A stretch of DNA of 64,000 nt. Origin: Paragordius varius. Lineage: Eukaryota; Animalia; Nematomorpha. Positions 1,888-59,520 of this stretch are shown piece by piece. The translations under genes were made by a program, and so were the position numbers. Location: contig OZ176054.1 of assembly GCA_964247055.1 (NCBI GenBank), forward strand, positions 12,152,001 through 12,216,000, read 5' to 3'. The notes beneath the pieces were generated by a model that saw nothing but the letters and a program-made list of their open reading frames with translations, had not been told where the DNA came from and made no database searches. Within the stretch, counting starts at the first letter, position 1. Every line of letters starts with the position of its first letter.

Positions 1888-2356
1888 CCCTAGAGCATTA
1901 TCTACCTATTTTTATTGGAAAACTTGTCTGGTTGATATAATTTAAGTTATCAATGATTACGCTTTTGATATTGGATTTGTGTCCTTTGTAAGTATTATAT
2001 GGGAACCACTATAGGATGCCGAAACCCTATTTTTGCTTAGCACCATATCAAAATTTTGAGATAAAAACTATCTAAACTCTTCTAAGATGGCCCAGATTTT
2101 ACGCTAGATACATTAGTTTATTATTTTTTATATCAATTATTACTTTACTATCTTTCTTTTTTAATAATAAAAATATGTAAGTAAATCTATGCATATAATA
2201 TTTTTACTTTAGCTCTTCTGGTAAAATATTATTGTTAAGCAATGAAGTATAATGGAGGCGTCGGATATATTGCAGAGTCTTAGTTATGACAAGTTTAAGT
2301 TGTTTGGGATTCGGAATCTCTCTTTTATTACAATATTCATGCAAAATCGTTTAAAA

Positions 2357-5300
2357 TTAGCTAAATTTAAAACTTCTTGAGCTAATACACTCTTCAACTC
2401 TACCAGTACACCCTTGATAAACTTTTATGATTCAAATCTCATAAATTTTGAATATTTAAAAAATAGCATATATCAATTAAGCTGTTTAAATCATATTAAG
2501 CGGTCTATAGCAGTGGTTGCACGCCCCACCAAACCGAAAATAAAAATTCTTGCGTCCCTCTTAAAAAAATCCGAGAAAACGTGAAATATATTATTATATT
2601 ATAAAATCCCAATCAATGAGATTCCTTATATCTGCATTTTTTGAAATATGTTTTCCATATCGGTAACTTTCGCAATCCTTCGTTTCTACTTTTATTTTTT
2701 CATTGAATTTACCAAACTTTTCGCGCCCCTTTTTGAGAACCACTGGTTTATAGCATGACCAATATAAATTTTAGGCATACTTGAGGATCTTGCGGTCCGC
2801 GGACTTCCAATACGTCTGGTTGAATTAGGACGAGGGGTTCTTCTAGGTGGTGTGAATGGCACTCTTCTTCTTGTAACATTGGTACGACCACCACCTGATC
2901 CTCCGCTTCCAGATCCGCTGCCACTTCCTGAACCGCTACCACTTCCTGAACCGCTACCACCGGAACCTCCACTGCCACTTCCGCTTCCTCCACTACCACT
3001 TCCACCACTACCGGATCCGCTACCACTCCCACTTCCCCCACTGCCGGATCCGCTGCCACCACTTCCGCTACCACTCCCTGATCCACCACTCCCACTACCG
3101 CCACTGCCAGATCCACTCCCGCTACCCCCGCTACCACTTCCCCCACTGCCAGATCCACTCCCGCTACCCCCGCTACCACTTCCGCTTCCACTACCACTCC
3201 CCCCACTGCCAGATCCGCTTCCACTACCACTCCCCCCACTGCCAGATCCGCTTCCACTGCCACTTGATCCGCTACCACTTCCAGACCCGCTGCCACTTCC
3301 ACTCCCTGATCCACTACTCCCGCTTCCCCCACTGCCGGATCCACTACCACTTCCTGATCCACTTCCACTCCCACTTCCCCCACTGCCGGATCCACTACCA
3401 CTTCCACTCCCTGATCCACCACTCCCGCTTCCTCCACTGCCGGATCCACCACTCCCGCTACCACTTCCACTGCCGCTACCACTCCCGCTTCCACTACCGG
3501 ATCCGCTACCGCTTCCACTGCCACTACCACCTATTATTATATTATATATATATGTATATATATACCAAATTTAGGGTCAAAATGTAGTTTATCTAATTTT
3601 CGCATTTTTGGAGAGTTAAACTTATCCTCAGAATGCGAAAATTTTGCATGTTGCATTTAAGTAAATAAACTCAAAAATCTCGTTCTTAAAAGTCACCTGT
3701 TTTTAGAATATAAAAAAATTTTTTTGTAAAAATGACTTCTCCGCAAAATACAATAAATTTAGACATATACCAAGGTTATATTGCCAAAATGAATTTTTTT
3801 AATGAAATTTTTCTGTGTATATGGGTTTTAAATTGTAACAGTATTAACTAGAGCAGGGGTGTCCAACACAAGGAGCTTACCAAATATTGATTTTAATAAA
3901 ATTTTGTGAGCATATTTTTGCGAAATATCGACATCTAATTTTTTCTCCGGTCGCACATAAAATCTCAGAGGCTCGCGTGTTGAACACTCCCAAACAGAGT
4001 ATCAGTATTGTCCAAAAACGCTTGGCTTTAAACAACAGCTTCTTAACTTTAAATTATTTCCAACATATATTAAAATCTTTTTTTACCTGAGATAAGGAAA
4101 GTATGTTACAATCCAAAAATGTTAGTTTTATAAAATATAGAGCCTTTTTTATATTTACAATATTTTTGAAGCTGGCTTAAATTTATAAAAAGTTTTTAGT
4201 TTATCTGTCCATTTCGGGGACCGAATGGGTTAATCACAAATACAAAATGTTAAGTAGTGTGCAAATAGGCGCCTTTAATACTACCCTCTATATCACTTTG
4301 AACACAAATAATACTTTTGTTTTTATTTTAATTTCTGATTTTTATATTGCAGACCTACTTCATAAAGGTCAAGTAAAACACAAGTTTATTATATTGTTTA
4401 GTATTAACTAATGATATGTATAGTAATTTTAACTTAAATATAAATTTGAAAATAACCAGCTGCTACTTAAAATTAGTTTTTGGAATTTTTCTAATATGGT
4501 ACGTGATTCCTAATTTTATTATCAATTCTGGAAGCCAATAAGCTTTTCTATCCAAAATACATTTTATAAATTACAATTTTGACCCAATTAAAATCAAACT
4601 CTTTCATTATGTTATTAATAATCTATATCCAATATATTAGGAGTTCAAAGCATCATACGTTATGCTGCCAGTGAGTATATTCTAGTTGTTAAAACTTTAG
4701 GGGGTTATACAAGATGTAAGTCCCTTTTTAGGAATAATATATATAATTACAAGACCACTAAGAAATCAGTTATTTATAGATATCTTTTATTAAATTTATA
4801 TTGCGATTCGCGATATATGTTATTATCTTAAAAAGAGGCGAGGATGAATGTTCAAAACGGGTTAACCATCCACTGTCTGAAAAATTTTGGTATATAATCT
4901 AATAGTCAATAAATAAACATGAATACTTATCCAAAAAATTGTCCCCTTTTGTCAAAATGGAATTTTTTTAATGGATAAATATTTATGAATTTCATACACT
5001 CGTTATGTACCTCATTTGATAAATAATTTGTATTTCGGATTATCAATTAAAATTCCCATCTTTGAGACTATTGTGATATTCAATTTTTCATGGGTTATTT
5101 TTAGAATCATATTTTTATATGGCTAGAAGACTAAACTTTATTCTTTTCGTAGTTTCATATATTTTGATAAATAAAAACAAAAATCGTTTTATGATCTTAC
5201 TCTTAGAATAAAATTTAAATATACGGTTATTTTCATGAAAGTAGAGTTTTAAATTTTTATGATTTATAACTCAAAAATATTAAATTCTTTTAAAAACATT

Positions 5301-5766
5301 GTCACCCCTAATAAAGATTAATACCTCAGCTATAAAACGTTCCGAAAAGTTATAAGCCACTTAAATTTTAGATATTTCGAAAAATTTGCATTGTAGCCAA
5401 TGTAAAATAATAAAATGACCTATATTAAATTATATGAAAGGTAGAGTAGAGTTTAAGAAATAATTCATAAAATTCCATCTTTTATTAGAAACTTTTAGGA
5501 TTGTGTCTTTTTAAAATTTAGGCAAAATGCAAAAAAAATCGACAATTCCGGTTTTTTTCTTGCATTTATATATACTACAAATATAAATAGATTTTGTACC
5601 TAATTTTTAATTTGGCACACAGTTATATAAAATACTATTTTATGTCCATTATTAGTATATATATATATATATAATATATATATTTACTTTGTTGGAAGCT
5701 GCTTTGTATCAAGATGAGCAGTAACAATAACCCAACAAACCATTTGCTACAAGGGTCCCGTCTCAT
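2357..5766 (-). CDS. Predicted secreted Gly/Ser-repeat protein, ~294 aa; exons 5766-5688, 3530-2781, 2412-2357
   Basis: Exon 1 encodes MRRDPCSKWFVGLLLLLILIQSSFQQ (signal-peptide-like) with a phase-1 GTAAAT donor. Exon 2 is 750 nt, phase 1-1 (AATAG acceptor, GTATGC donor), and encodes ~215 G/S residues plus an R/P-rich tail. Exon 3 encodes RCTGRVEECISSRSFKFS-stop, with AATAAA ~28 nt downstream. Exon lengths 79+750+56=885 nt stay in frame. Exon 2 is well supported; exons 1 and 3 are less certain. Confidence 0.68.
2511..2745. mobile_element. hAT MITE in intron 2 of the Gly/Ser gene
   Basis: Ends CAGTGGTT...AACCACTG. 8-bp TSD GTCTATAG/GTTTATAG (one mismatch). Confidence 0.8.
2887..3530 (-). repeat. 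GC-rich low-complexity repeat encoding (Gly-Ser)n on the minus strand
   Basis: Minus-strand codons are essentially GGN, AGY and TCN only. The Pro/Leu/Asp (plus) and Val/Ala/Glu (minus) ORFs in the track are other frames of the same repeat. Confidence 0.95.
3854..3992. mobile_element. Short degenerate hAT MITE
   Basis: Starts CAGGGGTGTCCAACAC and ends GTGTTGAACACTCCCA. Flanks AACTAGAG and AACAGAGT resemble a decayed TSD. Confidence 0.55.
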
Positions 5767-6884
5767 AACTTCAATAATTTGTAATTTAAACTAAAAATTG
5801 ATAAAAAAAATTAAAATGATTTAAATAATAGTTGGATCATTTCACTAAAAGTCATTGGACATTATATAAATTTCTTTAAGAGTTTGACTTTAAAAAATCA
5901 CCTAACTAAAAAAACATCTTTTCAAGGCCACCGTCATAATATCTTTAGCCAAAAATTGATATAGGTGATAATTAATAATTTTAGATCTTAACTTTAATAA
6001 TATGTTGTTTATTATAAAAAATATAAATGATATAATAAAAACATGTTGTCATGTTTGGCTCATTATACCAAAATTTTTTGTATGTTAAGATCAATAAATC
6101 AAAATCAGTTTAAAAACTTGTATGGTTTTGATAACTTTTAGGTCGTTTCAGGTATAAAGAGTTATATACAGGATATACCGTAAATTAATTGTATCAATGC
6201 CAACAAAATAGATATTATATCATGTGATTAGTAATTATCATTGTCATGTCATATATAATAAATTTCCCCTAATAAAAAATTACACATTCATCCTGATAAT
6301 ATATTATGATAAAAAAATGTATCATGTAACCATGATGTTCTTAGGTTTTGGTAATGAGAGTGATTTAAGAAACTTATTTACAATTTTGTTGGAAGTATAT
6401 ATCTGAAAAAGGCGAAATTGGCCCACATTTCTTAAAAATTTTTTTTTGACTAGAGCTAATTTCAACAAAAAGATATTTTAAAAAAATTATTTTTAGATGT
6501 GGTCGCCGAAAGTCCCAATTTTTTTTCACTCGTCTAAAATGGGCTGCTTCTTTGGAAACAAACGAAAATGCCGATTGTGGGAAAATATTTTTAAATATTT
6601 GCTAAATATTAATATAAACTAAAAATATTTCTAAAATTAATGTATACTTTTTTTGAAAAAATTTGAGTTTTAGAAATTTTGTTGAAGCGTATTTCAAAAT
6701 AAGGAAACAGTATAAAAATGATTTAAGATATTATAAAAACACATTTTATATATATTTCGATGAACATATCCATCATCAATGTTAATTTAAAGGTTCGTTT
6801 GCTTTAAAATTTGTGTGAATTTTACGAATATTTTAACAAATATTTTAATTAAAATTAGGAGGTAACAAAAATGTTTAGTATTAT

Positions 6885-7149
6885 TGTAGTAAATCAAGAA
6901 ACCGTAAAACAATAAGATTTATTGAGATAAAGTGCAAAAACTAAACTACATACAGTTTGCGATGTTTATATACTTTTTGTGAATATAATATTTACATGTT
7001 AAACCAAGGTAAAATAACGTGTGCAGGTTAAATACAAAATTGATACAATAGTTTAACTCATATATAAAAGGTCATCAAAATGTATTCAAATCTAATATAT
7101 AAATTGGTCTCGACTAAGGTTTACTAACTTGATGTATTCTAATCTATCG
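6885..7149 (-). repeat. 3' LTR of element 1
   Basis: Direct repeat of 10904-11168. On the minus strand it begins CG rather than TG (point change). Confidence 0.95.
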
Positions 7150-7156
7150 TATCTCC

Positions 7157-9776
7157 TTATCCAAATCCGAGCCGATCTGGTGCTTTTCTTTCTCTAAGAA
7201 AATATCTTCTTTCAGGTTCTTTCTCAGTTGTCTTTTCCGTTCTTATTTCAACCTGGGTGTCTTTCTCGTTTTCTTTTTCTTTGCTTGGTTCCTCCTCCAC
7301 CTCCCGATTATTGGTTGTCATCTCTTCATCTGTTTGGTTTATCGTTAAATTATCATCCTCCTCAACGCCGTTCTCGACTCCGGTCGGCCGTAATTGATCC
7401 GCATGCTTGCAAAGTGTTCGATTTCCATCTTTAACCGTGTACGAGAGTAGCCCTGTTCTCTCCAAAATAGAACCTTTTCTCCACCCTGAATTGATTTCAT
7501 TCTTTATGTACGCTTCTTCGTCCGGTCTAAAAACTTGATTGGGAATTATGTCGTCCTCTAATTGTTGTGCGGGTGTTTCCCTAACCCAAGAGAAGGGGGT
7601 ATTAATATGTCTTTTCAGAAATAAATTATACGGGCATTCTTTTGTGGCGCTATGTACGGCGGAGCGATAACCCCATAACACTTGGTTTATTTTTTTGTCA
7701 GGAGTCAGCTTAGAATCCGTTAACGATTTATAGTGTGCTTTTAAGGTGTAAATGACCCGTTCCACCAGCCCATTTGTTCGTGGATGATAGGGGGCGCTAG
7801 TGACATGTTTTGTGTTTGCTCGTTGCAAGGTATCTTTAAAATCTTTCGATGCAAAATATGATGCATTATCGGTAACTATCATTCGGGGAAACCCGTACCT
7901 TACACACCAAATTTCCAACCAATGTAGTATGTTTGCAGAATTAACAGTTCTTAGCAATTCGACTTCAACCCATCTGGAGCTACTATCTATAGCTACTAAC
8001 CAATACAACCCATCTATAGGACCGGCAATATCAAGATATATCCTTTCCCAGATACTCGTATTAAAATTCCATTTGTACGTTGGATTACTTTTTATGTTAC
8101 ACTCCGGTTTAACTGACACCCCATACAAGATCTCACATAACTTTCAATATCTTGGTTTATACCTGGCCAATAAACCCTAGCCTTGGCAGACTCTTTCATT
8201 ACATTAGCCCCCGAATGTCCAACATGCAAAAATTTTAAGGTTTCATTTCGCAACGCCCTGGGAATAAACAGACGATCGCCCCAATACAACAACCCATATG
8301 ATTCTTGTATTTCGTTTCTTATACTCAATATCGAATTTAAAATTGGAGCTCAATCATTATGATGTAGAGCCGATTTTAATGCCATCAAACACTCATCCCG
8401 TAAAGTATTTTCTTTCATTCGCGCTACGCTTAAGTTGTCAGTTGTTAGAAGTTGATATGCCTGGGTTGCTCCTCAACTTCCTCAGTTCTTCATACGGTAG
8501 ACGAGATAACCAATCCGCTAAATTTTCCGAACCATTAATATATTGTATAGTAAAATTATAATCGGCTGTTCTGAGTATCCATCTTACTAATCTACTATTG
8601 TTAATATTACTTAGATCTCTCTTAAAGCCAAACAACTTGATCAGGGGTTTATGATCGGTTAATAACACGAACTTTCTGCCATACACAAACATTATTTTTC
8701 TAGCGCATATAAAATTGCCCTTGCTTCTTTTTCAATTACCGAGAAATGTTGTTCTGCCTTCGCACATTTTCGAGGCGCAAAAGCTATCGGCCGTTTTCCC
8801 TCACTTGTCATATGTGATAAGACTGCTCCGAATCCGTCATTCGATGCATCTGTTTCCAACACTAACGGAAGGTTCGGGCTAAACGGTATTAGACATAATG
8901 CATTACTCACCAACAGTTTAGCTTTATCAAAAACCCTCTCTTCTTTTGTCGACCAACACCATTTCTTAGAACCTGTAAGCGCATGTAAGTCCGCGATTGT
9001 AGCATGATAAAGATGGAATAAAACGAGCGTGAAAATTTAACATTCCCAAAAAAGACCGAAGTGATGTTTTATTGGTAGGTGTAGGACAATTCAAAATTGC
9101 TTTTACTTTTTCGTTATCAGGTTTAATTCCTTTGTCTGAAATTATATATCCTAAGTATGACACTGAGGAACGAGCTAATTGGATTTTATCCTTTTTTAAT
9201 TTCAAACCCACAGCAGCTAATTTGTTCAACACTTTTTCTAAATATCCTTATGCTCCATCACCGTTGTTCCACTAACAATTACATCATCTAAGTAAACCGC
9301 TGTACCTGGACAATCTTTTAATAACTTATCCATAATTTGTTGAAATATCGTGGGTGCACTAGATATTCCAAATGGCAGTCTCTTAAATCGAAAAAGGCCT
9401 ATGTGTGAACTAAACGTGAGTAAATGTTGATAATCTTGGTGTATCGGACTTTTCCTTGCCCGATTTTAAACACTAACTGATCAAACGTTGGAATCAGATG
9501 ATCTACAGGAACCAGACTTGGGTTTAAAGTAACTCTAAAATCATTACATATGGCAATATCATTATCATTCTTTTTAACTATCACCAACGGAGTTACCCAG
9601 TCAATTCGTGTTTGCGAGGGGTTTATGGACTCTATAATACCCAGACTTTCAAGCCTCTTTAATTCACTCTCCACCTTAGACTGAAGCGGAATAGGTACCC
9701 TCCTGGCTGCAAATCTTTTGGGGATACTCCCTTTTTTGAGAAACAACTTGATGGGTGGTCCCCTGTAACACCCCAT
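7157..9776 (-). pseudogene. Disrupted pol (RT, RNase H, integrase)
   Basis: Fragments in several frames: WVTPLVIVKK/CNDFRVTLN, FKRLPFGISSAP..VYLDD, LETDASNDGFGAVL, LLTDHKPL, IYLDIAGP..APYHPRTNGLVER. The segment carrying the first RT catalytic Asp appears deleted after GQGKV. There are several frameshifts and stops. Confidence 0.9.
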
Positions 9777-10861
9777 ACCCTCACAAAAAAATCCTTAAAT
9801 TTATTCAATTCCACGTAATTAACATTTTTTACACATACAGCCTCTGGAAATCTGCATTCAAAGCTTTTCATCCATGGTAACCCAAAAATGTTACCCCAAT
9901 CATCCCTAGTAAACATACATTCCAACTGTTTGACCATACCATTCCATTTCACATCTACCACACATTGTCCCATCACCTCTACACCTTGCTGGTTGAATCC
10001 AACTATTGGACCCGCGGGTGCTAAGGTCGGCCTTTCAATCTCCATCCACGTGCTCTTCCCAATCAATGATATTTGAGCTCCGGTATCGTACAACATCCTC
10101 ACCCAATGGCCATTCAGACTTGCTTGCGTTCGGGCTTTATTATTATTATTATTATTGTTACCATTCAGTATATTAACGCACGGGCAACACCTTCCAAAAT
10201 GACCACGTCCTTTGCATCGGTAACACTCCTTGTTTGAAGCGGGACACCAGTTGATCACATGCACGTATCCACATTTTCCACATTTTTTTCTTATCATCAT
10301 AACCTGCCTATTGTCGGGACCCTGATCAATCAAGCAGCTGTCCGCCTTTTCGTACGCCATTGCCATTTCTACCACCATCTCCAACATAACCGGTTTCCCA
10401 TCAACCATTGCATCTGGAAATTTTGTGAACAGATCTACTTCCAATCTTTTGAGTTGTAACCCTCCAACAAACCCATCTCTGATTCTTAGCATTGCATCTT
10501 GCCCAAAGTTGCACCGGGCAGCACATTCCTTTACTCGAATCAAAAAATCCATCACTGATTCCGTGGCTTCCCTCCGGAGTTGCGTAAACTGGAACCTGGC
10601 TGCAAACACATTGTATGTCATAGCAAATAATTTTTTCCCAGCTGCTACCAAAGCATCCCAGCCCACATCCTCTAACAGTACGGGATAAAAGAATTTCTTC
10701 AACTTTGAAATATGGGATAGACCAATGTAGGCCAATAATAAGTTTTTTTTTGTTTCGTAATCTTCTGGAATTAATTTCACTTTTAACATTATCTTTATAT
10801 AATCGATATAATAATCAAAGCTAGTTGCGGGATCATAGGCTTCCAGACTTAATTTCTCCAT
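9659..10861 (-). CDS. Gag plus aspartic protease of the Mag-like element
   Basis: Intact 400-aa ORF. Knuckles CGKCGYVHVINWC and CYRCKGRGHFGRCC; protease motif LYDTGAQISLI. Confidence 0.85.
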   Translation of the reverse strand: MEKLSLEAYDPATSFDYYIDYIKIMLKVKLIPEDYETKKNLLLAYIGLSHISKLKKFFYPVLLEDVGWDALVAAGKKLFAMTYNVFAARFQFTQLRREATESVMDFLIRVKECAARCNFGQDAMLRIRDGFVGGLQLKRLEVDLFTKFPDAMVDGKPVMLEMVVEMAMAYEKADSCLIDQGPDNRQVMMIRKKCGKCGYVHVINWCPASNKECYRCKGRGHFGRCCPCVNILNGNNNNNNNKARTQASLNGHWVRMLYDTGAQISLIGKSTWMEIERPTLAPAGPIVGFNQQGVEVMGQCVVDVKWNGMVKQLECMFTRDDWGNIFGLPWMKSFECRFPEAVCVKNVNYVELNKFKDFFVRVWGVTGDHPSSCFSKKGVSPKDLQPGGYLFRFSLRWRVN

Positions 10862-10903
10862 GCGCGAATGTAATGAGGTAAAAAAAATATCGACCGCGCC
10901 AAA

Positions 10904-11168
10904 TGTAGTAAATCAAGAAACCGTAAAACAATAAAATTTATTGAGATAAAGTGCAAAAACTAAACTACATACAGTTTGCGATGTTTATATACTTTTTGTG
11001 AATATAATATTTACATGTTAAACCAAGGTAAAATAACGTGTGCAGGTTAAATACAAAATTGATACAATAGTTTAACTCATATATAAAAGGTCATCAAAAT
11101 GTATTCAAATCTAATATATAAATTGGTCTCGTCTAAGGTTTACTAACTTGATGTATTCTAATCTATCA
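10904..11168 (-). repeat. 5' LTR of element 1
   Basis: TG...CA termini; direct repeat of 6885-7149. Confidence 0.95.
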
Positions 11169-23110: not shown

Positions 23111-23362
23111 TGCTTGAACGATATCGTTTTCTTGGAAATATAACGTATAATGCATCATAGATAACTATTTATAATTTACCAAATTATTTTTATTTTGATA
23201 AATTATTCAAGGAATTTTCTATGTAAACGCCTGAAACAATAAGAAAAATAGAATAATGTAATGCCACATCATTTAATATATTATCTTCTAAGATGTGGGA
23301 GTTTAAAGCTGGGAAATATGTTCAATTTAGAATATACGTCAATATACAAATTTTGTGTCTCA

Positions 23363-23860
23363 TCTATATATTTATGAAAATGGAAAATGCTGGCTTGGTG
23401 ATCTGTTTCCGGAAAACCGATAAACCCATTCAAATCCAAATATTGAAAAAATATAATCATTAATGAATGCCCTGACAATAGCTTCGCCCCTTTTTTGAAT
23501 TAGGCCCCAGTTCGGGCCCACGCCGAGTAAAAAACGGGTTTTTTTGAAAACAAAAGTCCACAAAAATCGTGTCTTTGAGACAATTTTTCGGAGAACGTGT
23601 TGGACCATTCACTTTCAAATATAATTTTTGTTTACTTATTTTCGATTGCGCCGAACATAGTCGGCTCGCATTTTTAATTTAGGCACTCTTTTTACCCGCC
23701 CGTAAAATGCCATTTTTTCAAAAAACAAAGTGCACAAAAACAATTTTTTATATCTATTTTTCCCCTAAACAATAAATTAGTATGAATGCACCGTTTTAAA
23801 ATTCCTATGAGATCATAGCTATTAAATAATGTTCAAAATAATCTACATATGTGGATTATT
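23363..23860 (+). mobile_element. Helitron family copy B (5' part plus alternative extension)
   Basis: Starts A|TCTATATATTTATGAAAATGG. The first ~400 bp match copies A, C and D; the continuation is shared only with copy E. Confidence 0.75.
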
Positions 23861-24044
23861 TTATTATTCCATTAGGATTCATACTTGTGTTAAACTGTAT
23901 AATTCTAATACAATATTCTGGTCATGATTGCCTACCTGTCAACCAAAATTCCAACACCACATTCAAACCACCAATCATTCACCATTTAAACTCTCCAAAG
24001 AATTGCGAAAATTAGAGAGCATATTTGAGAATAATAGCCTGTTT

Positions 24045-24410
24045 TTAGCAGTACAGTACTAGGTTTCCGAAAAAAAACTGCGCCTGTACTGCCCTGACTT
24101 TTGTACTGCTTTTAAAATTTTTTGAAAATATATATATATAAAAAAATGAATGTGGAATTTTATAGAGGAGTACCCTCTTTAAGATAATAATTTGTAAAAA
24201 AATAAAAGGTTTATTTTTCGGTAAATAATAAGATTGGCCTATTTTTAATTGTAATATTTTATTTTCTGATTGAATTATACATGGAATCGGGTTTCGGACC
24301 TACAAAACCGCTTATGAAGGCAATTGTGCAGTGGCGGAACTATAATCGACTGTAAGATTTAGGCTAACGGCCCTTTAACTTAGGGCTTCCGCAAAAGCGG
24401 CCACAAAATA
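24045..24410 (+). repeat. Dispersed repeat, inverted copy at 59770-60155
   Basis: GCAGTACAGTACT...TTTTGTACTGCTTTT, AGATTGGCCTATTTTTAATTG and CAGTGGCGGAACTAT...AGGGCTTCCGCAAAAG blocks all recur, reverse-complemented, at 59.8-60.15 kb. Confidence 0.7.
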
Positions 24411-24593
24411 CAAAATAGACACATAATGAATTTGATTAGTAAAAATTTGATCAAAATTTAAAAGTATCAAAGTGTATCAAGAAAAGGGAGTAACAGCCTC
24501 AAGTTTCCACTGTTCACAAAAGGCGTCCTTGCTGCCTCAATGTTTGTTTCAGTTAATTTAATGCATTTGTTAGATATTTTTAATTGTTTCTAA

Positions 24594-26792
24594 TTTATAT
24601 ATTTATGAAAATGGAAAGTGGTGGCTTTGTGATCTGTTTCCGGAAAGCCGGTAGACCCATTCAAATCCAAATGTCCAATAAATATGATCATTAATAAATG
24701 CCTCGACAATAGCTTCGCACTTTTTTAAATTAGGCCCCCAGTTCGGGCCCATCCCATGTAAAAAAGGGTTTTTTTGGTCCACAAAAATCGTGTCTTTGAG
24801 ACAATTTTCCGGAATATGTTGGACCATTCAATTTCATATATGAATTTGTTTTACTTATACTCGATTGCGCCGAAGATGGTCGGCTCGCTTTTTTAATTTT
24901 GGCCTTATTTTTTTCCCGCTTCCCCTGTAAAATGCCACTTTTTTCAAAAAAACAAGTCCACAAAAATTATTTTTTTAAATCTATTTTTCGCCCAAGGTAT
25001 GAGACTGTAAAAATTCAATAAGGATTCCAGGTATTCTCTGTTAAAAGGCAGAAATTTTAGTCGTGCTTTTTTATGACTGCTGGGTAAGAAGATACCCGCT
25101 AAAAACTGCCCGCCATATCAAAATAGCGTGCTTTTAGGGCTAAATTTCAGAAAACCTATGCCATATGAGTTCAATAGGTGCTTAAAATGTTTCCCGTAAC
25201 AAGGCAAAAATTTAGGTCGTGCGGTTTTTCAATACTAGCCGTTAATTAGGCCCTTCACGCCCTGAAAAATGCACCATCATATAATGATTTTTCAGTTTTG
25301 AGGCAATTTTTCCAAAAACTAATGAGAGCATATGGAATCAATCATGATTCCAGGTCGCCGTAAAAGAGCAAAAATTTTAATCAAGCGCTTTTTTTGTATC
25401 AGCGTTTAAACTGCGCCACCAGACCCAAACTGGGTTGTTTAGTAGTTAATTTTCAGAAAACTTATTAGATCATATGAGTTCAACAAGGGTCTGAAATACC
25501 TGTAAAAAAGCAAAAATTTAAGTCGATCGGATTTTTAAATTGACCGTTAATTCGGCCCTTGCCCGGAAAAATAAGCCACCATAGAATGACTTTTTGGTTT
25601 TGAGGCAATTTTTTGAAAATCCCACGAGAGCATATGGAATCAATCTAAATTTCGGTATTACACGAATTAAGGAAAATATTTTAAAGCGTTATTTGTTACG
25701 CCTATGATTGTGTGACCATATCGATACAGCATGCCTCTAAGGCTAAATTTCAGAAAACCTATGAGACTTTGTGAGTTCAATAAGGATTTACTGCCCCTTA
25801 AAAACAAATATTTTGGTATAGGGGGTTATTTTAATGAGTCGTTAATAAAAGTTTTACGCCCTGCCATAGAACAATTTTGTAGTTTTAATATAATATTTCT
25901 AAGAACTAATGGGAACATATGGAATCGATGATAATTCTAGATATTCACCATATAAAGGCAAAAATTATGCCCAGGCTTTTTTTCTATCTGCCTCTATGTA
26001 AGGAGCTAACCGCAAAAAACAGCGCCACTCTAAAGAAATCGCCTTGTTTTGCAGCTAATTTACTGAAATTTTATGAAGCCATATGAGCTCATTAAAATCT
26101 TGAAATATTATCTGTAACTAGGTAAAAATTTACAGGCGTTTTATATCAATCGTTAATTTGGGGCCTTTATCCCCTAAAAATACGCCATCATATAACGATT
26201 ATTTAGTATTTTTTCGAATAACCCATGAGACGATGGAACCAAAGATGATTCCAAATATTTCCCTATAAAGGCAAAGAATTCAACTCAGCGCTTTTTCCAT
26301 ATAGTTCTATGGGTAGGGGTCTACCGGTTTAAAACTGAGACGTCATACAAAAATGGCGTGGTTTTAGTGCTAATTTTCAAAAAACTTAAGAAGCCAGACG
26401 AGTTCAGTTAAACACATTTCTGGGGAATTTGTATAATATATTCTTTCCTTTTAAATAGACCATAAATGATTTACTTTTTATATCCCTTGATCCCAGCGGT
26501 GTGAACACAATTTTAAAATAAAACTTTTAACCATGATTTCCTAAAACGAAAATCTTAAAATAAATCCAATCATAGTTAAATATTAACTTTATTAAGGGAC
26601 AGTTAAAATATGATCAATTTCGAGAAAACAATATTTGACCCTATGCAAAAACCCGTAAAAGAAAGTTTAAAGATATTTTTATCAAATATGCTTTTTATTA
26701 TTTTTTATCTCCATTACCTCTATTTATTGAAAAATATTAAAAACAATTATCAGTAAGACTACGTCACAGCGAAGAAAGACAGGGCCAGCTAC
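24594..26792 (+). mobile_element. Non-autonomous Helitron copy C (full length)
   Basis: 5' A|TTTATATATTTATGAAAATGG (TC mutated). Internal ~300-bp tandem units. 3' GTCACAGCGAAG.. hairpin remnant followed by GCTAC|T. Confidence 0.85.
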
Positions 26793-33232: not shown

Positions 33233-35518
33233 TTAGCTGCCCTCTCACGCTTCGCTGTGACTTAGTCTCACCGATAATTATTCTTATTAATTTCCATAAA
33301 TAGAAGTAATGGAGATAAAAATAATAAAATGTATATTTAATAAAAAGAAGTCTTTAATTATCTTTTTACGGGTTTTTGCATACAAATATTGTGTACTCGA
33401 AATCGACCATATTTAAACTGTCCCTTATTAAAGTTAATATTCAACTATCATCGAATTTATTTTAAGATTTTCGTTTAACAAAATCATGGTTAAAAGTTTT
33501 ATTTGGTTTTCCAAAATAAATCATTCGTGGTCTCTTTTTTAAAGAAAAGAATGATATCATACAAATTCTCCTGAAATGTGTTTATAACTCATATGGCTTT
33601 TTAAGTTTTTTGAAAAATAGTTCCAAAACCGCGCCATTTATGGCGTCTCAGTTTTAAACCGGTAATCTACCCATAGACGTATATGGAAAAAGCTCTGAGT
33701 TAAATTCTTTGCCTTTATAGGGAAAATATTTGGAATCATCTTTGATACCATCGTGTCATGGGCTATTCGAAAAAATACCTCAACACTAAATAATCCTTAT
33801 ATGATGGCGTGCTTTTAGGGCATAAGGGCCCCAAATTAACGGATAATAAAAAAATGCTTGACCTTAGTTTTTACATAGTTACGGGTAATGCTTTTAATGA
33901 GCTCATATGGCTTCATAAATTTTCTGTAAATTAGCTCCAAATCAACGCAATTTTTGGCGGATAGCTCCTTCCTAAGGGCAGGAAAAAAGCATTGGGCAAA
34001 ATTTTTGCCTTTATACGGGGAATATCTGAAATTATCATGGATTCCATATGTTCCTATAAGTCTCATGGGTTTCTGAAAATTGACTCCATATATCTATATG
34101 GTGAGCATTTTTACGTGGGAAGCCCCCTAACTAGGGGCGAAACAAAAAAACGCTCGATCAAAATTTTTGTCTTAATTTGAATAATACCTGAAATCATGAT
34201 TGATTCCATATGCTCTGGTGGGATTTTTGAAAAATTGCCTCAAAACCAAAAAGTTATTCTGTGGTGACGCATTTTTCAAGGCAAGTGCCTAATTAAGGGG
34301 TAGTTCAATAACGCTCTACTTAAATTTTTGCCTCTTTACGGACAGTATTTCAAGCCCTTATTGAACTCATATGGGTTGATAAGTTTTCTAAAATTTGCCT
34401 CCAAAGTTCCGCTATATCGATATGGTGGCGCAGTTGTTGGCGGGTAGCCCCCTACCCAGAAGTCGATATAAAAAAGACGTTCGATAAAAATTTTTTATAG
34501 GGGAATAGCTGGAATCATCATTCGATCCATATGTTTTTAATAGTTTTTGGAAGAATGGCTTTAAAACCAAATAATAGTTCAATGATAGCGCATTTTTAGG
34601 GCGTAAAGGGCCTAATTAACGGCTAATTTAAAAACCACTCGACTTAAATTTTGCCTTTTTACGGGCAACATTTCAGGCCCTTATTAAAGTTATGTGGCTG
34701 ATAAGTTTTCTGAAAATTAACTCCTAAACACCGCAATTTCGATATGGTGGCGCAGTTTCAGGCGGGTAAGAAGCTCATACAAAAAAGCGCTTGATTAAAT
34801 TTTTTGTCTCTTTACGGAAAATACCTGGAATAATGATTGATTACATATGCTCTCATTAGTTTTTGGAAAAAATTCCTAAAATTAAAGAATCATTCTATGG
34901 TGACGCATTTTTCAGGGCCTAATTAACGGCTAATTTCAAAAAACCGCACGCCCTAATTTTTGCCTTGTTACGGGAATATTTTAAGCACCTATCTCATATG
35001 GCCTGATAGGTTTTCTGATATTTAGCCCCAAAGGCACGCTATTTCTATATGACGGGACAGTTTTTAACGGGTATCTCCTTACCAAGCAGCCAATATTAAA
35101 AAAAGCACGACTAAAGCTTTTGCCTTCTAACAGGGAATACCTGTAATCCTTATTGAATTTTTACGGTCTCATATCTTAGGCGAAAAATAGATTCATAAAA
35201 TTATTTTTGTGGACTTTTTTTGAAAAAATAACATTTTACGGGGGGAGCGGTTAAAAAGAGGGCCTAGCAATCAAAAATAAGTTAAAAAAAATCATATTTG
35301 AAAAATGGTTCAACACGTTTTCCCGAAAATTGTCTCAAAGACACTTGTAAAACCGTTTTTTACACGGAGTGGGCCCGAACTGGGGTCCTAATTCTAAAAA
35401 AGGCGAAGCTATTGTCGGGGCATTCATTAATGATTATATTTTTTTGCATTTGGATATGAATGGGTCTACCGGTTTTCCGTAAACAGATCACAAAGCCAGC
35501 ATTTTCATTTTTTATAGA
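33233..35518 (-). mobile_element. Non-autonomous Helitron copy D (full length)
   Basis: On the minus strand it starts A|TC at 35518 and ends CTAA|T at 33233. Intact hairpin TCACAGCGAAGCGTGA lies 8 nt before the CTRR end. Colinear with copy C. Confidence 0.85.
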
Positions 35519-36184
35519 TTTTGGGACTTATTCGATAATTTTAACATGATAAAACTCAAAAACGTTAAAATAAAAATGGATTGGAGAATATAAGAGAGTG
35601 TTATAGCTTTATTCGATTATTAATATACGAATATTTAGGCGTTTTCCCTTAATTTAAATAGTGTTATCTGTATAATCTCATTTATTTTAGGATTCTCCGA
35701 AAAAGTTTTAACCAATTTGATTATATCCTGTTTCAACCCTTAATATATTTGTCAGCTGTGTTGGGTTTGATTAGGCCCCAAAAAAATTATCAATTTACAT
35801 TATTATATGTTGGTTGTTATATTTTGCAATATATCTAGATACGTACCAATCTTAAGTGAATTTCAAACAACTAATAACAATATCAAACGGATACTAATTG
35901 TTGAGGCATATGCGAATTTCCTTAAACAGCGCGGATTCTACGAGGAATTCGTCGATTTTTTCCATCTTTCTTTCCTTAATATTTCAGCTTTCGCATGGGC
36001 TTGGTCAAATTTAAGCGCAACTGGAACGGTATATTAACTTTGTATTTGTAAACAAAAACTTATTACTTTTGATCAAAATAATTGTTTAAGTAATTAATAT
36101 TATATTTATATTATATGATATGGAAATGGAAATGGATTAAAGCCAATGCTTAGGAATAAATTTTTTGGGTAATAACTTGGTTGT

Positions 36185-40845: not shown

Positions 40846-43800
40846 TGTAAGATGGGATCACACGTAAAAGGAAATATTTATTGTATATCAAAAATATGTC
40901 GAAATATATCAAAAATATATATATCACAATAGGTTATGGTACTGTATATATGTGTGCCTAACTTAATGAGGTATAAATGTATTCAAATTTATCGTGTAAA
41001 GGGCCTTCAAAACTATACAGTTTATTCAAAAATATAATAATACTAAAAACGTTGGTTGCGAGGTTATTCCCTAATTTGATAATACAAAAGAGGTTCATGA
41101 AATAAGCTATTATCTCTTTTGAAACGATGTGGTAATAAATGTAAATTACAACTATAACATCCCTTCCTTCTTCTAACGAAAGTGACGGGTTCTCGCTCCG
41201 TCTTTCCGGTATTTTTGTGGGTAGATATCGCACTATTATTCTCCTGTATATATTTTTTATGGTACCGACTAACCTTTCTACCACCCCATTTCTTTTAGGA
41301 TGGCAGGGGGTAACTTTAATATGTTTCACCCCTAACATACTTATAGTTGACGTAAAGTACTCACTGTTAAAATACGATGCGTTATCGGTAACTATCTCGC
41401 AAAACCAAACCTTGCAAAGTTTCTTCTAGTTTGTGAATTACATTCGCTGCGGTTACCTTTTTTAATATACAACAAATATTAACCATCTACTCCGGCTCTA
41501 TCAATATGCAAACACTTCCACACAGCAACATTATCATCCCAATGATAAGCGGATTTCTGAGTTACATTCTACCTACTACGTTGGCATGATTCATTCTGAC
41601 TACTGGCTTTAACCAGGTCGTTTTCTGATTCTGGCCAGTAAATCTGGCCATCGATTTTATGATACCATCTTTTTTTGGAAGGGCTTTGGAATTATAATCC
41701 GATCATTTAGCCTTAACAAGCCATATTGATATGCCAACTCGTTTTTACGGTTTACAAACTTTTCTAGTTCTGGATAAATCCAGTCATGGATTTTCAACGC
41801 TTTACTTTTTGTAATATCAGATATAAAGCGGTATCTTTTCGAATTTCATCTCTCACATCCTAACAATTTAAAAATCTCAGGTATATGGTAACCGCATAAT
41901 CTTCATCATAGGCATCGATCTCCATCGGCTATCTCGATAAATAATCACCTCTATTTTGTGCCCTGATGAATTTAAAAATCGTATTCAATTATTTTATTAA
42001 TCCATGTTAGCACTCTAGCATTATGTATTTCTTTTAAGTTTGGATCTAAAACTATCTTTACTAATGGTAAATAATCAGTTAATATCAAAAATTTTCTAAC
42101 TATGAAACTTTTTTAGCGCAAACAATGTTGCTTTTAATACTGATAGTGGAGTAGTTCCGTTCGGCATTGCTACATTTTTATCAAGCATATGCGATCGGTA
42201 CCCTTTCACGATTAACCTAATGAAAATTCACCCAAATCCTAAATCTGACGCATCCTTTTCTATTATCAATTTCTTATCAGTATTATATGGTGTTAAACAC
42301 TTTTTCGCTTTACATATTCTTAGCTGAAGCACAGCATTTATCATTCTGGGTCCAAAACCAACTCGCATTTTTAGTAGTTAATTCATCTAAAGGACCGTCT
42401 ATAAGCTGTAATTTTGATATTAAACGTTCATGAAACGTCAACAAAAATCCTAAAAAATTACGTAACGACTTTTTAAGGCCTTTTTAATTCCTTAAATGCC
42501 TTGATTTTGCTTTTCGGGCTTATACCCATTTTTCGATATTTCAGACCCTAAATAGTTCACTAATTCTGCACCTATCATCATTTTATCTTTTCTTAATTTG
42601 AATCCAGCCTTATCGAGACGACTTAATACGTTATTTAAATTGTTAATATGTTCACTTTCCGTCTTACTAGTCGCTAGAACGTCATCTAAATACACACAAG
42701 TTCTCGAACCGTCAGCTAGCACCTGTTTTACTACCTGTTGAAAAGGATGGTTGCCTTGGTCTGTCCGAACGGCATGCGTTTGTATCTAAAAAAAATCTTT
42801 ATGTGTCGAAATAGTTAATAATTGTTAACACTGCTCTGCCACTGGCATCTGGGGGTACGCATCTTTTAGATCAATTTTTGTTGACCTTCGCCTATTTTTG
42901 ACACCAACTCATCAAACGTGGGAATTCTTGCTGCATATTCGTAACTCTCTGTTCGGTTCTACATTAACCGTGGACGTGTCCCATGTCACAGCCGTAATGT
43001 CAGGATCGACCGGTTCTAAGATGCCTAAGTTTTGTAGCCTCGTCAGCTCTTTCTCTACCTTTTCTCTTAATGGAAAAGGCACCCTGCGACATGGCCATAC
43101 TTTCGGGATCGCATTCGCTGCAATGCAATTTTTTACTGGGTCTTTATAACACTCTAACTTTTTTAGAATAAAATCTTAAAATTTTTGCAAATTTTATTCA
43201 ATTTAAGATAATTTTCTTTAACCTGGGCATCTCAATTGGCAATCCAGTCCACAGATAAGTAGTGCAACCATTTTTTTCAGGATAATATGACCCATTTTAC
43301 CGTTTATCTCCAAGTTTACGGTTGTGATGCCCATCATTGAAACTGTGGTGTTATTGTACGATTTGACCGGAGGCGCCGAGGCATATTTTGGCTCACCTAT
43401 TTGCCACCATGCAAAATTCATCACGCTGACATCTGAACCGGTGTAGATAAATTCTTTCCTCAAGCCATTTATCATTATTGTTATAACCAATGGTGTTAGA
43501 GCTAGTTTTGGCCATACGGATATATCCTTTAACAGTAGTCTATTAGTATTAGGTTTCTGTTTTTTGGCTAAGCACATCCTTGCGAAATGATTCAATTTGC
43601 CACATTTGTTGCACCTTCGTTTCCACGCTGGACATTTGTTGGGCGTGTGTGTTCCACAGTGTCTGCATGGTGTTGACGTTTTTGTCATTGGTTGTCGGTA
43701 GCTATTAATTATTTTGGTTGTTACCATATTGTAAACGATTGGTATTTTGCAAACGATCGATATTATTGTATTTTTTTATGATTCTGGCGATAATGCTAGA

Positions 43801-43948
43801 AGCTACTATCTTCATTGATTTGTCCGTCATTGCGTCTTAGCTACCAATGTAAGATGGGACCACACGTAAAAGGAGATATTTATTGCATATTAAAAATAGA
43901 AGGTTCGAAATATATCAAAAATATATTATCACAAAAGGTTATCGTGTT

Positions 43949-43988
<40 letters not shown>

Positions 43989-52023: not shown

Positions 52024-53918
52024 TTATTTAAAAAAATAATGCAAAAATTTAAATGTGTACTCTAATGACAAAGTTTTGAGACAAATTTGTTGAATAACGC
52101 CGCAACCAAATGCATCGCCCAATACATTAACACATGTACGAAATCGATCTAATAACCAATCTACAGGCAAAAGAACTGCAATATCATTGACAGGTAATCC
52201 CACGCTATTAAGAACCATTACCATGGTAACAAGACCGGCGCCTGGGATCGCGGCCGCTCCAATACTTGCAAACGTAGCAGTTATACTTAGGGTCAAGAGT
52301 TGACCAAGGCTCAAAACTTTACCTACATATATATATATATATATATTATATTTATTTATTTATTTATTGACAATAAAATTTGGTTAACTTAAAAAAAAAC
52401 ATATGGAAGCATTTAAAAAATGACCATTTATATGTTTATATTGGGTCAAATTAAAATTGAGCATTTAGATAGGAGGCAGATCAATGTGTAAGGCAAATTT
52501 ACGCATTTCAAAAAAATAATTCATATCATGGCTCATTATTTTGTTAATATATGTTTACAATCTTATAATAAGTATTTTCGAACCCAAACTGGGCTAGAAA
52601 GATAAATCTAAACATAATTTGAATATTCGATATCTATTTCGATTAATAAAAATAGCATCACTCAAATTTGTAAAAAATCATCAAAGCATTAACCATTAAG
52701 ATTGGCTATGAAAACGGCTGCGACAGCTTCATACAAAGCCGTACCATCCATGTTTATGGTGGCGCCTATAGGCAACAAGAATCGAGTAATTCGTTTATCA
52801 ATACCATTATTTCGTTCCGTACATTGGATTGTGAAGGGAAGCGTGGCGGAACTTGAAGCAGTCGCCAAAGCTGTCAATAGGGCCTGAGTAAGCCCACGCA
52901 TAAATACAAATGGATTCTTTCGCGTAAACATCCAATAAATTAGGGGTGTGGTCACAAACACATGTATAGCTAGTCCACTAACTACTGCAGAAACGTAGAG
53001 ACCAAGGTTACTGAGTGCCACTTTGAGATTAATGATGGAAAGAACTTTGGCTGTTACAAGGGAAAGAATACCAATGGGTGAATACCACATCATATACTCC
53101 ACAAGTATCATAATGATATCATTGATTATTACAAACGAGGTTATAACGATAGATTTTCCCGGGTCAGCTGATACAGGCTGACGGCATAATATACTACCAA
53201 AAGCCATGGAAAACACTATGATTCCCAGAGTGTTCATTACATCCTCATAAACTACTTTTCTTTTATATGGTAATGATGGAATTTGAGTTATGTTTTTATC
53301 AATATTGGCTTCCTTAATATTTGAATCTGATTTGATGGGTTCATAAACAGTGCGTTGAGATTGAAAAGTAGCTTTAACAATATTTTCTGGGAATAAATTT
53401 CTTACCAAATCCATAATGGCATCTAGTGTGGTTGAAGTGGTTTCTTTCAATAAATTTCCGTTTTTTGTCGAGGATGTATTCACTGAAGATATATTTGTCA
53501 GGTTCTTATTTAAAGCAGCATTTAATAAGGTTTTTTGACTAATGATACCCGGGCGTAAACATTTCACCATAATAATACCAGTTAAAACTGCTATAAAAGT
53601 TGTAACCATATAATAAGTTAATCCCCATTTCCCTATTTTTCCACTAAGTTTTGGATCAAGCTGGGCACAAGCGGTTAGCAAACTAAAAGCTATCAGAGGT
53701 AATATTAGGCATCGCAACATGTTCATAAACAATTCACCGGGAAATTCAATCAGTATTAATACCCATGGTGGAATATATGTTTGTCTTAAAGATGAGCCTA
53801 TGGCTAAACCCAAAAATACAGCAGAAACTGTGCAAATAACTAATAAGTGTTTGCGTAAAAAATTTATGATGTCGGTGAATAGCATTGATTGAATAGTATA
53901 CTTTGTGTAATCATCCAT
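52024..53918 (-). CDS. SLC1A: Excitatory amino acid transporter (SLC1/EAAT, Na+-coupled glutamate/aspartate symporter); exons 53918-52694 and 52322-52024 (a third exon at ~51870-51705 is possible)
   Basis: Motifs [65 protein letters not shown] and [18 protein letters not shown] 371-nt phase-1 intron joins NLNG|KVLSLGQ without a gap. DRFRT and YEA indicate an acidic-amino-acid EAAT rather than ASCT. The paralog cannot be assigned. Confidence 0.93.
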
Positions 53919-57421: not shown

Positions 57422-58259
57422 GACTATCATTATCAACATAATATTTTTATGACAAACGCTTTCTTTATTACAGTTTTGTAATATTTAGTAAAGTATAAAA
57501 TTTAAATTGTTAAACAATCGTTTTAAAAATTAAAATTTATCAAAAATTAGTGGAAAAATTAATTTTAGCGAAAATTTATAAATTAATTTTTTTGTGTTTT
57601 TTACACGATTTCCCAAAATTTTAAAACGCTCAAAAGGGATGAAATGTTGATTAAGAAATTTATACAATGAATAATAGGCTCGAAAAATTTCCTCTCCAAA
57701 ATTAAAATAATTATAACAGAAGAGTCGAACCACCATATGCATGCTCCGTATAGAAAAGATGGGGGTAGAAATTAAATTAATTCAAAGATTTATTAGAAAC
57801 TGCCTCAATAAAAAACATTAATTTACGATTGATATAAATATTTAGGTTGTTTTGTATAAAAATATTAAATATCTTAAACATCTACTTTTACTCAACTAAA
57901 GATAGAAATATATATCGCAAATTTTTAGATGGATTTCCATTATCTGAGCCAAGAAATATTAATATTAACGGTTTTTTTATTGCTGAAAAAATTAATGGTT
58001 TTAATGTTGATGGTTGTTTCCTTTGCACCAGATGTGATTTTAGCTTAGGGCTATTTACACAAGGCTAAAAAACAAGGTGGAATATAATAGGATAAATTAA
58101 AATACTTCCTTAAATTAATGTAACCAGATATTTTAAACTTGGACGCGGCACAAAATTAAAACATACTTTGCCTGTTTTTACACCATCGTGTGGTATATTA
58201 GACAGTTTCCACAAAATAACCTGATGAATTATATATATATATATATATATATATATTCT

Positions 58260-59520
58260 GATAGCAAAATATCAGGATTATCATGGTGTTTTTGGTTTTA
58301 AGGTTTACAAGTTATTAAAGAAAGTTATTTACACTTTTGTGGTATGTGCTCCGTATAAAATTGCAAGTGCGCAATTTTTTCAAATATATTTTTTGCTGAA
58401 AGCCAAATGCTTTATTTCAAAAAATATCACTAAAATATAACATAAACTACATATAAAAAACAAAAAATATTTTTAATAATTTTGAATTTTTAGATGTGGG
58501 CTCTGAAAGTCCCAAATTTTTTGGCTTTTTTAAAATGGACTGTTCTCTTAAAATAAACGCGAAAATTCCGACATTGTTCAATTTAAATTTATACTAAATT
58601 TTGATATACACACTTTCATAAATTAAATTTTTAACAAAATTTTGTTGAAGCGTACTTCGTATTATTTTGAACTAGATGGAAACGATATAAACGGTTAAGA
58701 AATATGTTAATTTTATAAAATCTAGCCGGACTACTAAGGAGGGGGGGCTATTTTAAATAAGGGACAATAAATGCACATATGTGGATTATTTCGAATATTT
58801 AAATATGATTTTATAAGAATTTTAAAACGGTGCATTCATACTAATATATTGTTTACTTGGGGGAAAAATAGATTTAAAAAATTATTTTTGTGGACTTTGT
58901 TTTTTTGAAAAAAATGGCATTTTACGGGGGGAGCGGGTAAAAAGAGGGCCTAAATCAAAAAAGTGAGTCGACTATGTTCGGCGCAATCAAAAAAAATAAA
59001 CAAAAATCATATTTTGAATGGTTCAACACGTTCTCCAGAAAATTGTCTCAAAGACACGATTTTTGTGAACTTTTGTTTTCAAAAAAACTCGTTTTTTACT
59101 CGGCGTGGGCCTGAACTGGGCCTAATTCAAAAAAAGGGCGAAGCTATTGTCGGGGCATTCATTAATGATTATATTTTTTCGATATTTGGATTTGAATGGG
59201 TTTACCGGTTTTCCGGAAACAGATCACAAAGCCAGCATCATTTTTATAAATATATAGATTCGATAATGCTAATCAATCAAAATTTTGATTAAAATATTCA
59301 TTCGTTTGCAAATTTATGTTAAATAAAAATTGTGTTTTTTTTACAAAAATTCCCCAAAATTTGAAAGCAAACAAACTTTTAAATTAAAATTCTGAACCTA
59401 TAATAATGTTCAACATCTATATCTTAAAGCTACCGTTTCCATCATGCTTCAAAATCGTAAGAAGTACGCTTCATCAAAATATCTCAAATTTGTTTATGCA
59501 AAAAATAAGAAAACTAATAA
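58260..59520. mobile_element. Foldback arms (same family as 6290-11650) flanking Helitron copy E (boundaries approximate)
   Basis: AGATGTGGGCTCTGAAAGTCCCAA at ~58495. TTTTGTTGAAGCGTACTTC..GATGGAAACG (~58640-58685) is inverted at ~59430-59480. Confidence 0.55.
58760..59258 (-). mobile_element. Helitron family copy E (5' part plus alternative extension)
   Basis: On the minus strand it starts A|TCTATATATTTATAAAAATG at 59258. It matches copy B, including the extension TTAGTATGAATGCACCGTTTTAAAATTC. Confidence 0.75.

Follow-up and report, generated by a model that had tools for sequence, protein, structure and literature searches.

Does a GC-rich tandem repeat in the genome of the nematomorph Paragordius varius encode a protein, and if so, what kind of protein would it be? 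The repeat lies in a 64,000-nucleotide (nt) stretch of contig OZ176054.1 (assembly GCA_964247055.1, positions 12,152,001 to 12,216,000 of the forward strand). This whole stretch is called the window below, and all coordinates refer to it. On the minus strand the repeat reads as an unbroken series of Gly and Ser codons in a frame that has no ATG. The list of open reading frames (ORFs) therefore misses it, as the initial annotation of the window pointed out; the same holds for every internal exon of a eukaryotic gene and is unremarkable.

The best explanation of the sequence is that the repeat is part of a genuine protein-coding gene (5766..2357, minus strand) that is confined to one lineage; we would take its exons 1 and 2 as certain and its short 3′ end as uncertain. 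The orphan gene model sums to 294 codons over three exons, and its parts are as follows.

5868..5862, minus strand: TATATAA, possibly a TATA box, about 100 nt upstream of the ATG in a genome that is AT-rich
5766..5688, minus strand: exon 1, 79 nt, made of the ATG, 26 codons and 1 base; phase-1 donor AAA/GTAAAT
5687..3531, minus strand: intron 1, 2157 nt, 20–30% GC; starts with GTAAAT followed by (TA)n and ends in a (TA)n-rich tract with ...AATAG
3530..2781, minus strand: exon 2, 750 nt, phase 1-1; acceptor ...AATAG, donor GTATGC
3530..2887, minus strand: Gly/Ser block of exon 2, 215 consecutive Gly or Ser residues including the split Ser codon
2886..2781, minus strand: basic tail of exon 2, 35 residues; base 2781 opens a split codon
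2780..2413, minus strand: putative intron 2, 368 nt; donor CAA/GTATGC, acceptor ...ATCAAG
2412..2357, minus strand: putative exon 3, weakly supported; a split Arg codon and 17 codons, with the stop at 2359..2357
2780..2692, minus strand: alternative 3′ end, should the donor at 2781 go unused; the frame is open to a stop at 2694..2692

Coding constraint in the Gly-Ser frame

Exon 2 is a sharply bounded GC island, with 48–65% GC against 20–30% around it. The base composition of the window is 21–47% GC, mostly 23–35%, in line with the 26.9% GC reported for the nematomorph Gordionus montsenyensis. The Gly/Ser run of the exon is made of the junction Ser, 213 codons starting at 3528 (116 Gly and 97 Ser, nothing else and no stop) and 1 further Gly, giving 215 residues. 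The earlier count of about 215 almost pure Gly-Ser residues is exact, and no other residue occurs inside the run. The block is composed of the units GS (74), GGS (19) and GSS (2), and it contains 95 Ser-Gly dipeptides, 73 of them in the form S-G-x-G. Strictly alternating (GS)n stretches reach 13 units and are broken by extra Gly or Ser. At the DNA level, Tandem Repeats Finder detects overlapping imperfect tandem periods of 15–105 nt with 64–94% matches, and identical 31-mers reveal recent internal duplications at 3101–3258 and 3323–3405.

The tail behind the block contains 11 Arg, 6 Pro and 6 Thr among its 35 residues, and no acidic residue. The sequons NVT and NST are present, together with the clusters RRR, RR and RR, all three of which lie within 25 residues. 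Re-reading recovered every one of the tail features listed initially, that is the Arg/Pro richness, NVT, NST and RRR. The lack of acidic flanks, also listed, extends to the whole exon, in which none of the 249 residues is Asp or Glu and the surroundings of the repeat are strongly basic.

The repeat is almost certainly constrained as protein in the Gly-Ser frame, and not as DNA or as a plus-strand Pro/Leu sequence. The amino-acid entropy of this frame is 0.99 bit, compared with 1.4–3.1 in the other frames, and chance would not come near such a value. The third bases of the GGN codons comprise A (45), T (32), G (23) and C (16). Those of the AGN codons are T (52) or C (24) and never a purine. Purines thus occupy the third position in 68 of 116 GGN codons and in 0 of 76 AGN codons, where a purine would specify Arg (Fisher p = 1.5e-20). 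When identical 5-codon contexts were collapsed to allow for repeat copies related by duplication, the contrast persisted (p = 4e-17). AGA is absent from the repeat, yet it accounts for 7 of the 11 Arg codons in the adjoining tail; as the main Arg codon there, it is not avoided in general.

The Ser codons point in the same direction. They comprise 76 AGY (AGT or AGC) and 21 TCN (TCA, TCC or TCT) codons, and 9 codon types occur among the 213 codons of the run. Switching between AGY and TCN is synonymous only in the Gly-Ser frame. The GC fractions at codon positions 1, 2 and 3 (GC1/2/3) of the repeat are 0.54/1.00/0.33, showing that the GC excess is confined to positions 1 and 2. The non-repetitive tail gives 0.42/0.83/0.25 (GC2 versus GC3, p = 1.1e-6), and GC3 of other coding sequence in the window, taken from a transporter exon and another long ORF, is 0.27–0.31. 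The synonymous variation (all GGN codons, both AGY and TCN) had been taken to mean that the protein is kept rather than the DNA. The purine ban, the Ser switching and the GC3 values all agree with that view. The other minus frame places the variable base at codon position 2 and reads a mixture of Val, Ala, Glu and Gly with an entropy of 2.49.

Coding from the plus strand is extremely improbable. The frame there (2852..3574) would give a Pro/Leu/Asp-rich repeat protein; it is open for 240 codons with an entropy of 1.40 bit, and its variable bases also fall at third positions. However, it leaves the ban on AGN purines unexplained, all CCN codons being Pro, and it turns the 21 TCN codons into acidic residues (18 Asp, 3 Glu) interspersed with Leu. 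A stop is located just upstream of 2852, no ATG is present, and the non-repetitive tail is coding-like on the minus strand only.

The absence of any functional gene has also to be weighed. The repeat might be a GC-rich minisatellite, or an ORF that is never or no longer expressed, which mimics an exon. This view is favoured by the tandem structure, by the recent duplications inside it and by the lack of any relative or family in the searches described below; in addition, where a repeat is 3-periodic, slippage alone would produce indels that are divisible by three. Nevertheless, AGR and every other variant at first and second positions are absent while the third positions are saturated, and a neutral minisatellite does not explain the AGY/TCN switching. 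GC3 stands at the genome level in the repeat and in the non-repetitive tail alike. The edges of the exon carry AG and GT at the exact positions, and a phase-matched signal exon lies upstream. We therefore regard this explanation as quite unlikely, and exon 2 as very probably a genuine coding exon.

Signal exon, splice sites and the 3′ end

AG directly precedes the first Gly codon of exon 2, GTATGC directly follows the tail, and on the upstream side a stop (3573..3571) closes the frame. The 750-nt phase 1-1 exon flanked by AG and GT, with a Ser codon at its upstream junction, had been proposed in the initial annotation, and on re-reading all coordinates match; the splices themselves are predicted. 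The A at 5688, the last base of exon 1, would join GT of exon 2 to form that Ser codon.

Like a signal peptide, the product of exon 1 has a basic n-region, followed by a hydrophobic core of 12 residues and by a c-region that is polar. A purine is at position −3 of the ATG. The exon lies 2.2 kb upstream of exon 2 and is phase-compatible with it. Both strands of the window were scanned for ATG starts that are followed by a basic n-region and a 10-mer of strong hydrophobicity. Eight such starts were found, 2 of the 8 with a good donor inside the ORF, and exon 1 is the only one on the minus strand. By a rough estimate, the chance of having such a phase-matched signal exon as a neighbour is about 0.01–0.03. 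The proposed phase-1 upstream exon with a signal-like peptide thus passes a crude filter, and its position next to exon 2 is unlikely to be a matter of chance.

The one other signal-peptide-like start with a good donor is at 56753 on the plus strand, where the donor (TCG/GTAAAT, phase 1) comes 94 nt into the ORF; a further overlooked gene for a secreted protein may have its first exon there.

The acceptor of exon 2 ends a (TA)n-rich tract, and so does the acceptor of a homology-supported phase-1 intron ((TA)n-TGTAG/GT) in the transporter gene of this window. The latter intron was placed by eye, from where the coding frame resumes. It has an unusual GTTAAT donor, and its acceptor comes directly after a (TA)n microsatellite. 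Microsatellites of this type occur at 5650–5689, 3538–3568, 52328–52361, 43947–43984 and 58227–58263. In the two introns seen, (TA)n abuts the splice sites at both ends of intron 1 and at the acceptor of the transporter intron. Such tracts at splice sites may be a general feature of introns here, replacing the polypyrimidine tract. A miniature inverted-repeat transposable element (MITE) in the introns was considered but not confirmed; the dispersed-repeat check of 2200–5800 returned only (TA)n matches.

Downstream of exon 2 the model is less secure. Modelled exon 3 reads 18 residues with C-x6-C, and AATAAA is found 28 nt downstream, at 2329..2324. The C-x6-C end reads as in the initial annotation. 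That exon 3 is the true end of the gene is not established, given the other acceptors and the read-through described here. There are 77 AG sites downstream, and from 33 of them a phase-1 frame would run for 12 codons or more. Reading past the donor at 2781 gives 29 open codons, counted from the split one, with a stop that overlaps an AATAAA at 2696..2691. AATAAA is itself frequent, at about 2.6 per kb per strand. Exon 3 and its C-x6-C end would thus be one of many possible 3′ ends, and are weakly supported.

These observations bear on the possibility that exon 2 is coding but belongs to a different architecture, with another first exon, extra exons, read-through or another acceptor, so that the signal peptide or the C-x6-C end would be foreign to the protein. 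The many acceptors, the read-through that ends at AATAAA and the frequency of this signal all leave room for it. On the other side, no second signal exon of this kind occurs on the minus strand of the window, and the phase of exon 1 fits. Transposon copies fill the flanks (6885–11119 and 397–1658), leaving little room for more exons; because the locus is boxed in by transposons, the gene is probably compact. The read-through stretch, with GC1/2/3 of 0.28/0.38/0.34, lacks codon periodicity and looks less coding-like than exon 3, which shows some periodicity (0.24/0.59/0.18), over only 17 codons. We judge a different architecture improbable, and continue with the three-exon model.

Relatives, physical behaviour and possible function

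All searches for relatives were run exon by exon, with exon 2 or single exons as query. With the tail, word-index searches of proteins of 137–436 and of 64–203 residues gave no match at E ≤ 0.1; the shorter range was chosen because the repeated 31-mers would break assemblies near 3100. A Pfam scan of the exon 2 product found no family at E ≤ 0.01, a search of the ESM Atlas by features gave nothing usable, and tblastn within the 64-kb window found no paralogue. An exhaustive HMMER search of 1.84 billion cluster representatives produced 44 matches at E ≤ 0.001, the best at 1.5e-10. They were rejected as relatives, being unrelated proteins with low-complexity linkers that contain Gly and Ser. The longest pure Gly/Ser run among these 44 best matches is 82 residues, compared with 215 here, and the tail is present in none of the 44. 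HMMER down-weights biased composition, so this result shows that no relative is detectable, and not that such runs are absent elsewhere. The word-index, Pfam, ESM Atlas and HMMER results are in keeping with the lineage-specific protein that had been suggested at the outset.

Predicted from a single sequence by AlphaFold2, the product has no secondary structure and a predicted local distance difference test score (pLDDT) of 35.8. GS repeats are soluble, free of structural bias and ideal-chain-like, as measured by Förster resonance energy transfer, small-angle X-ray scattering and size-exclusion chromatography (10.1101/2021.11.24.469609). Both results leave room for assembly at high concentration. 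On the strength of this literature and of the AlphaFold2 result, the mature product is best pictured as a two-block polymer. It has the features of a secreted disordered protein, namely a signal peptide, no defined domain and a low-complexity disordered region of at least 30 residues, all as predicted. Secreted low-complexity proteins without domains are a major component of the cuticle of a nematode, the nearest ecdysozoan that is well studied (10.1101/2022.03.11.483951).

From the composition of the two blocks we infer how the protein might work. Exon 1 would encode a cleavable signal peptide, whose removal would leave a secreted polymer of two intrinsically disordered blocks. For the Gly-Ser block, which has no charge, we expect high solubility and flexibility, a contour length of about 75 nm and accessibility to O-linked modification. 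The tail, charged at about +11 net (about +13 at most if modelled exon 3 is counted) and bearing two N-glycosylation sequons, would tether the chain electrostatically to polyanions, for instance glycosaminoglycans, charged surfaces or acidic proteins of the matrix. The protein would probably serve as a hydrated spacer, coat or adhesive in the extracellular matrix, a secretion, or the egg or cuticle covering of the worm. The length of the block would shift by slippage or unequal exchange, while selection would purge every variant that is not Gly or Ser.

A silk-like fibre had also been put forward in the initial annotation, and it is the least supported of the proposals, given that GS repeats are reported to be soluble random coils and that AlphaFold2 yields no structure. 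Bombyx fibroin and the louse nit-sheath proteins LNSP1/2 (PMC6328571) resemble the present protein in secretion, in long Gly-X repeats that have probably grown by slippage in all of them, and in short non-repetitive ends. At X, however, they chiefly have Ala, or Gln-Ala, and this drives packing into beta sheets, whereas pure Gly-Ser is reported to form a soluble coil, and there is no homology. A beta-sheet fibre has been inferred for the Gly-Ala repeats of louse nit glue (PMC6328571).

In composition the block is also like engineered (GS)n and (GGS)n linkers. The units are essentially identical to those of the block, with its 74 GS and 19 GGS, and the same physics is expected. The present chain is natural, about 10 times the usual length, makes up about 80% of the mature protein and is not placed between two folded domains. 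The bacterial and other linkers among the HMMER matches are Gly/Ser runs of secreted or surface proteins too, but all of them lie between folded or complex regions. The nematode cuticle families APPG, IDPA/B/C, FIPR and NSPB (10.1101/2022.03.11.483951) are alike in signal peptide, lack of a domain, compositional bias, predicted disorder and ecdysozoan setting. They have consensus sequences of their own and are prone to phase separation, whereas the protein here consists of uncharged Gly/Ser and a cationic tail, and none of them was matched in the searches.

A proteoglycan core of the serglycin kind offers a different function for the same gene. Xylosylation of the Ser-Gly sites, with chondroitin or heparan chains attached there, would yield a hyper-anionic proteoglycan, either secreted or of granules, and the tail would be masked by the glycans of the protein itself or bind them. 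Serglycin and C. elegans CPG-2, CPG-3 and CPG-4 (PMC2063922) likewise have a signal peptide followed by a Ser-Gly run, and they are small lineage-specific cores without homology across phyla. The chondroitin cores of C. elegans are often small and SG-repetitive and are unrelated to vertebrate cores (PMC2063922). Here an uninterrupted Ser-Gly repeat stands behind a predicted signal peptide, and Ser is followed by Gly at 95 sites, 73 of them S-G-x-G. Xylosyltransferase assays routinely use silk fibroin, a Gly-Ser acceptor poor in acidic residues (PMC4517395), indicating that acidic flanks are not absolutely required in vitro. In contrast, the rule for attachment sites wants at least one Asp or Glu, usually within eight residues (Esko & Selleck, quoted in PMC2063922), and exon 2 offers none. 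Compared with the serglycin and CPG cores, the run is far longer and its flank is strongly basic. There is no kinship by sequence or Pfam, the serglycin profile PF04360 being unmatched in the scan of the exon 2 product. We consider a proteoglycan core unlikely.

A further idea is that the Gly/Ser polymer is a natural free-standing 'ideal chain' under strict selection, joined to a polycationic anchor. It could act as an entropic tether or brush in a secretion or coat of the hairworm, or as an independently evolved serglycin-like carrier that is glycanated or phosphorylated without acidic flanks. We consider this rather unlikely.

The basic clusters of the tail allow yet another reading, in which the protein is a prepropeptide. 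The Gly-Ser block would be a spacer, and RRR, RR and RR would be convertase sites releasing short peptides, one of them looped by a C-terminal disulfide. The predicted signal peptide, the presence of all three clusters in a stretch of 25 residues and the C-x6-C loop of modelled exon 3 would suit such a precursor. However, no peptide copies are repeated or conserved, no Gly amidation signal precedes the basic pairs, and the looped peptide hangs on the putative exon 3. Moreover, we know of no precedent for a neutral spacer of 215 residues in a prepropeptide. This reading is very unlikely.

We return to the secreted disordered polymer of matrix, coat or adhesive. Several points weigh against it. 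No search returned a relative, so that conservation between species could not be drawn on. Repeat copies related by recent duplication inflate the codon counts, although the purine test survives their removal. The signal peptide was called with a home-made filter, exon 3 is not unique among the downstream acceptors, and the tethering or matrix function is drawn from composition alone. Taken whole, as a real gene together with this product, it is still the best explanation that we have, and we hold it about equally likely to be right or wrong. The kind of protein is a known one, a secreted Ser/Gly repeat protein and lineage-specific low-complexity orphan. Unusual are the length of the block, its absolute purity, the lack of acidic residues and the cationic tail.

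Surroundings of the locus and implications

A long terminal repeat (LTR) retrotransposon occupies 6885–11119 on the minus strand, 1.1 kb upstream of the ATG. Its LTRs (6885–7100 and 10904–11119) are 99.5% identical. It encodes gag and an aspartyl protease (ORF 9659–10861) and an integrase (ORF 7157–8128). The element is young but probably no longer intact, since pol is divided among several ORFs. A dispersed repeat of about 1.2 kb at 397–1658 has copies at 23362–26789, 33239–35519 and 59020–59303 with 66–85% identity; the family probably represents DNA transposons or interspersed elements of another type. The remnant of a further retroelement is at 40958–43727 (minus strand), with an integrase-like ORF (40958–41338) and a gag zinc-knuckle ORF (43218–43727). 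The transporter gene mentioned above, of the glutamate-transporter type (sodium:dicarboxylate symporter), is at 52024–53918 on the minus strand. It matches PF00375 (SDF) with E = 4.7e-70, and its first exon has 409 codons.

If the Gly-Ser gene is not expressed, it would be an ORF that resembles a proto-gene and is well preserved, and a different explanation would be needed for its codon pattern. As a gene it exemplifies the repeat-rich orphans that are easily lost when annotation uses repeat masking. If it is expressed, it would be an extreme case of a natural disordered polymer of a single composition that is kept pure by selection. It would then provide a natural test of what an uncharged Gly-Ser chain can do outside the cell, as a spacer, a brush, a glue, or a substrate for xylosylation or phosphorylation without acidic flanks; were it glycanated without them, the accepted rule for attachment sites would be challenged. 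The protein, once expressed, would also be a candidate component for the almost unknown matrix and secretion biology of Nematomorpha.

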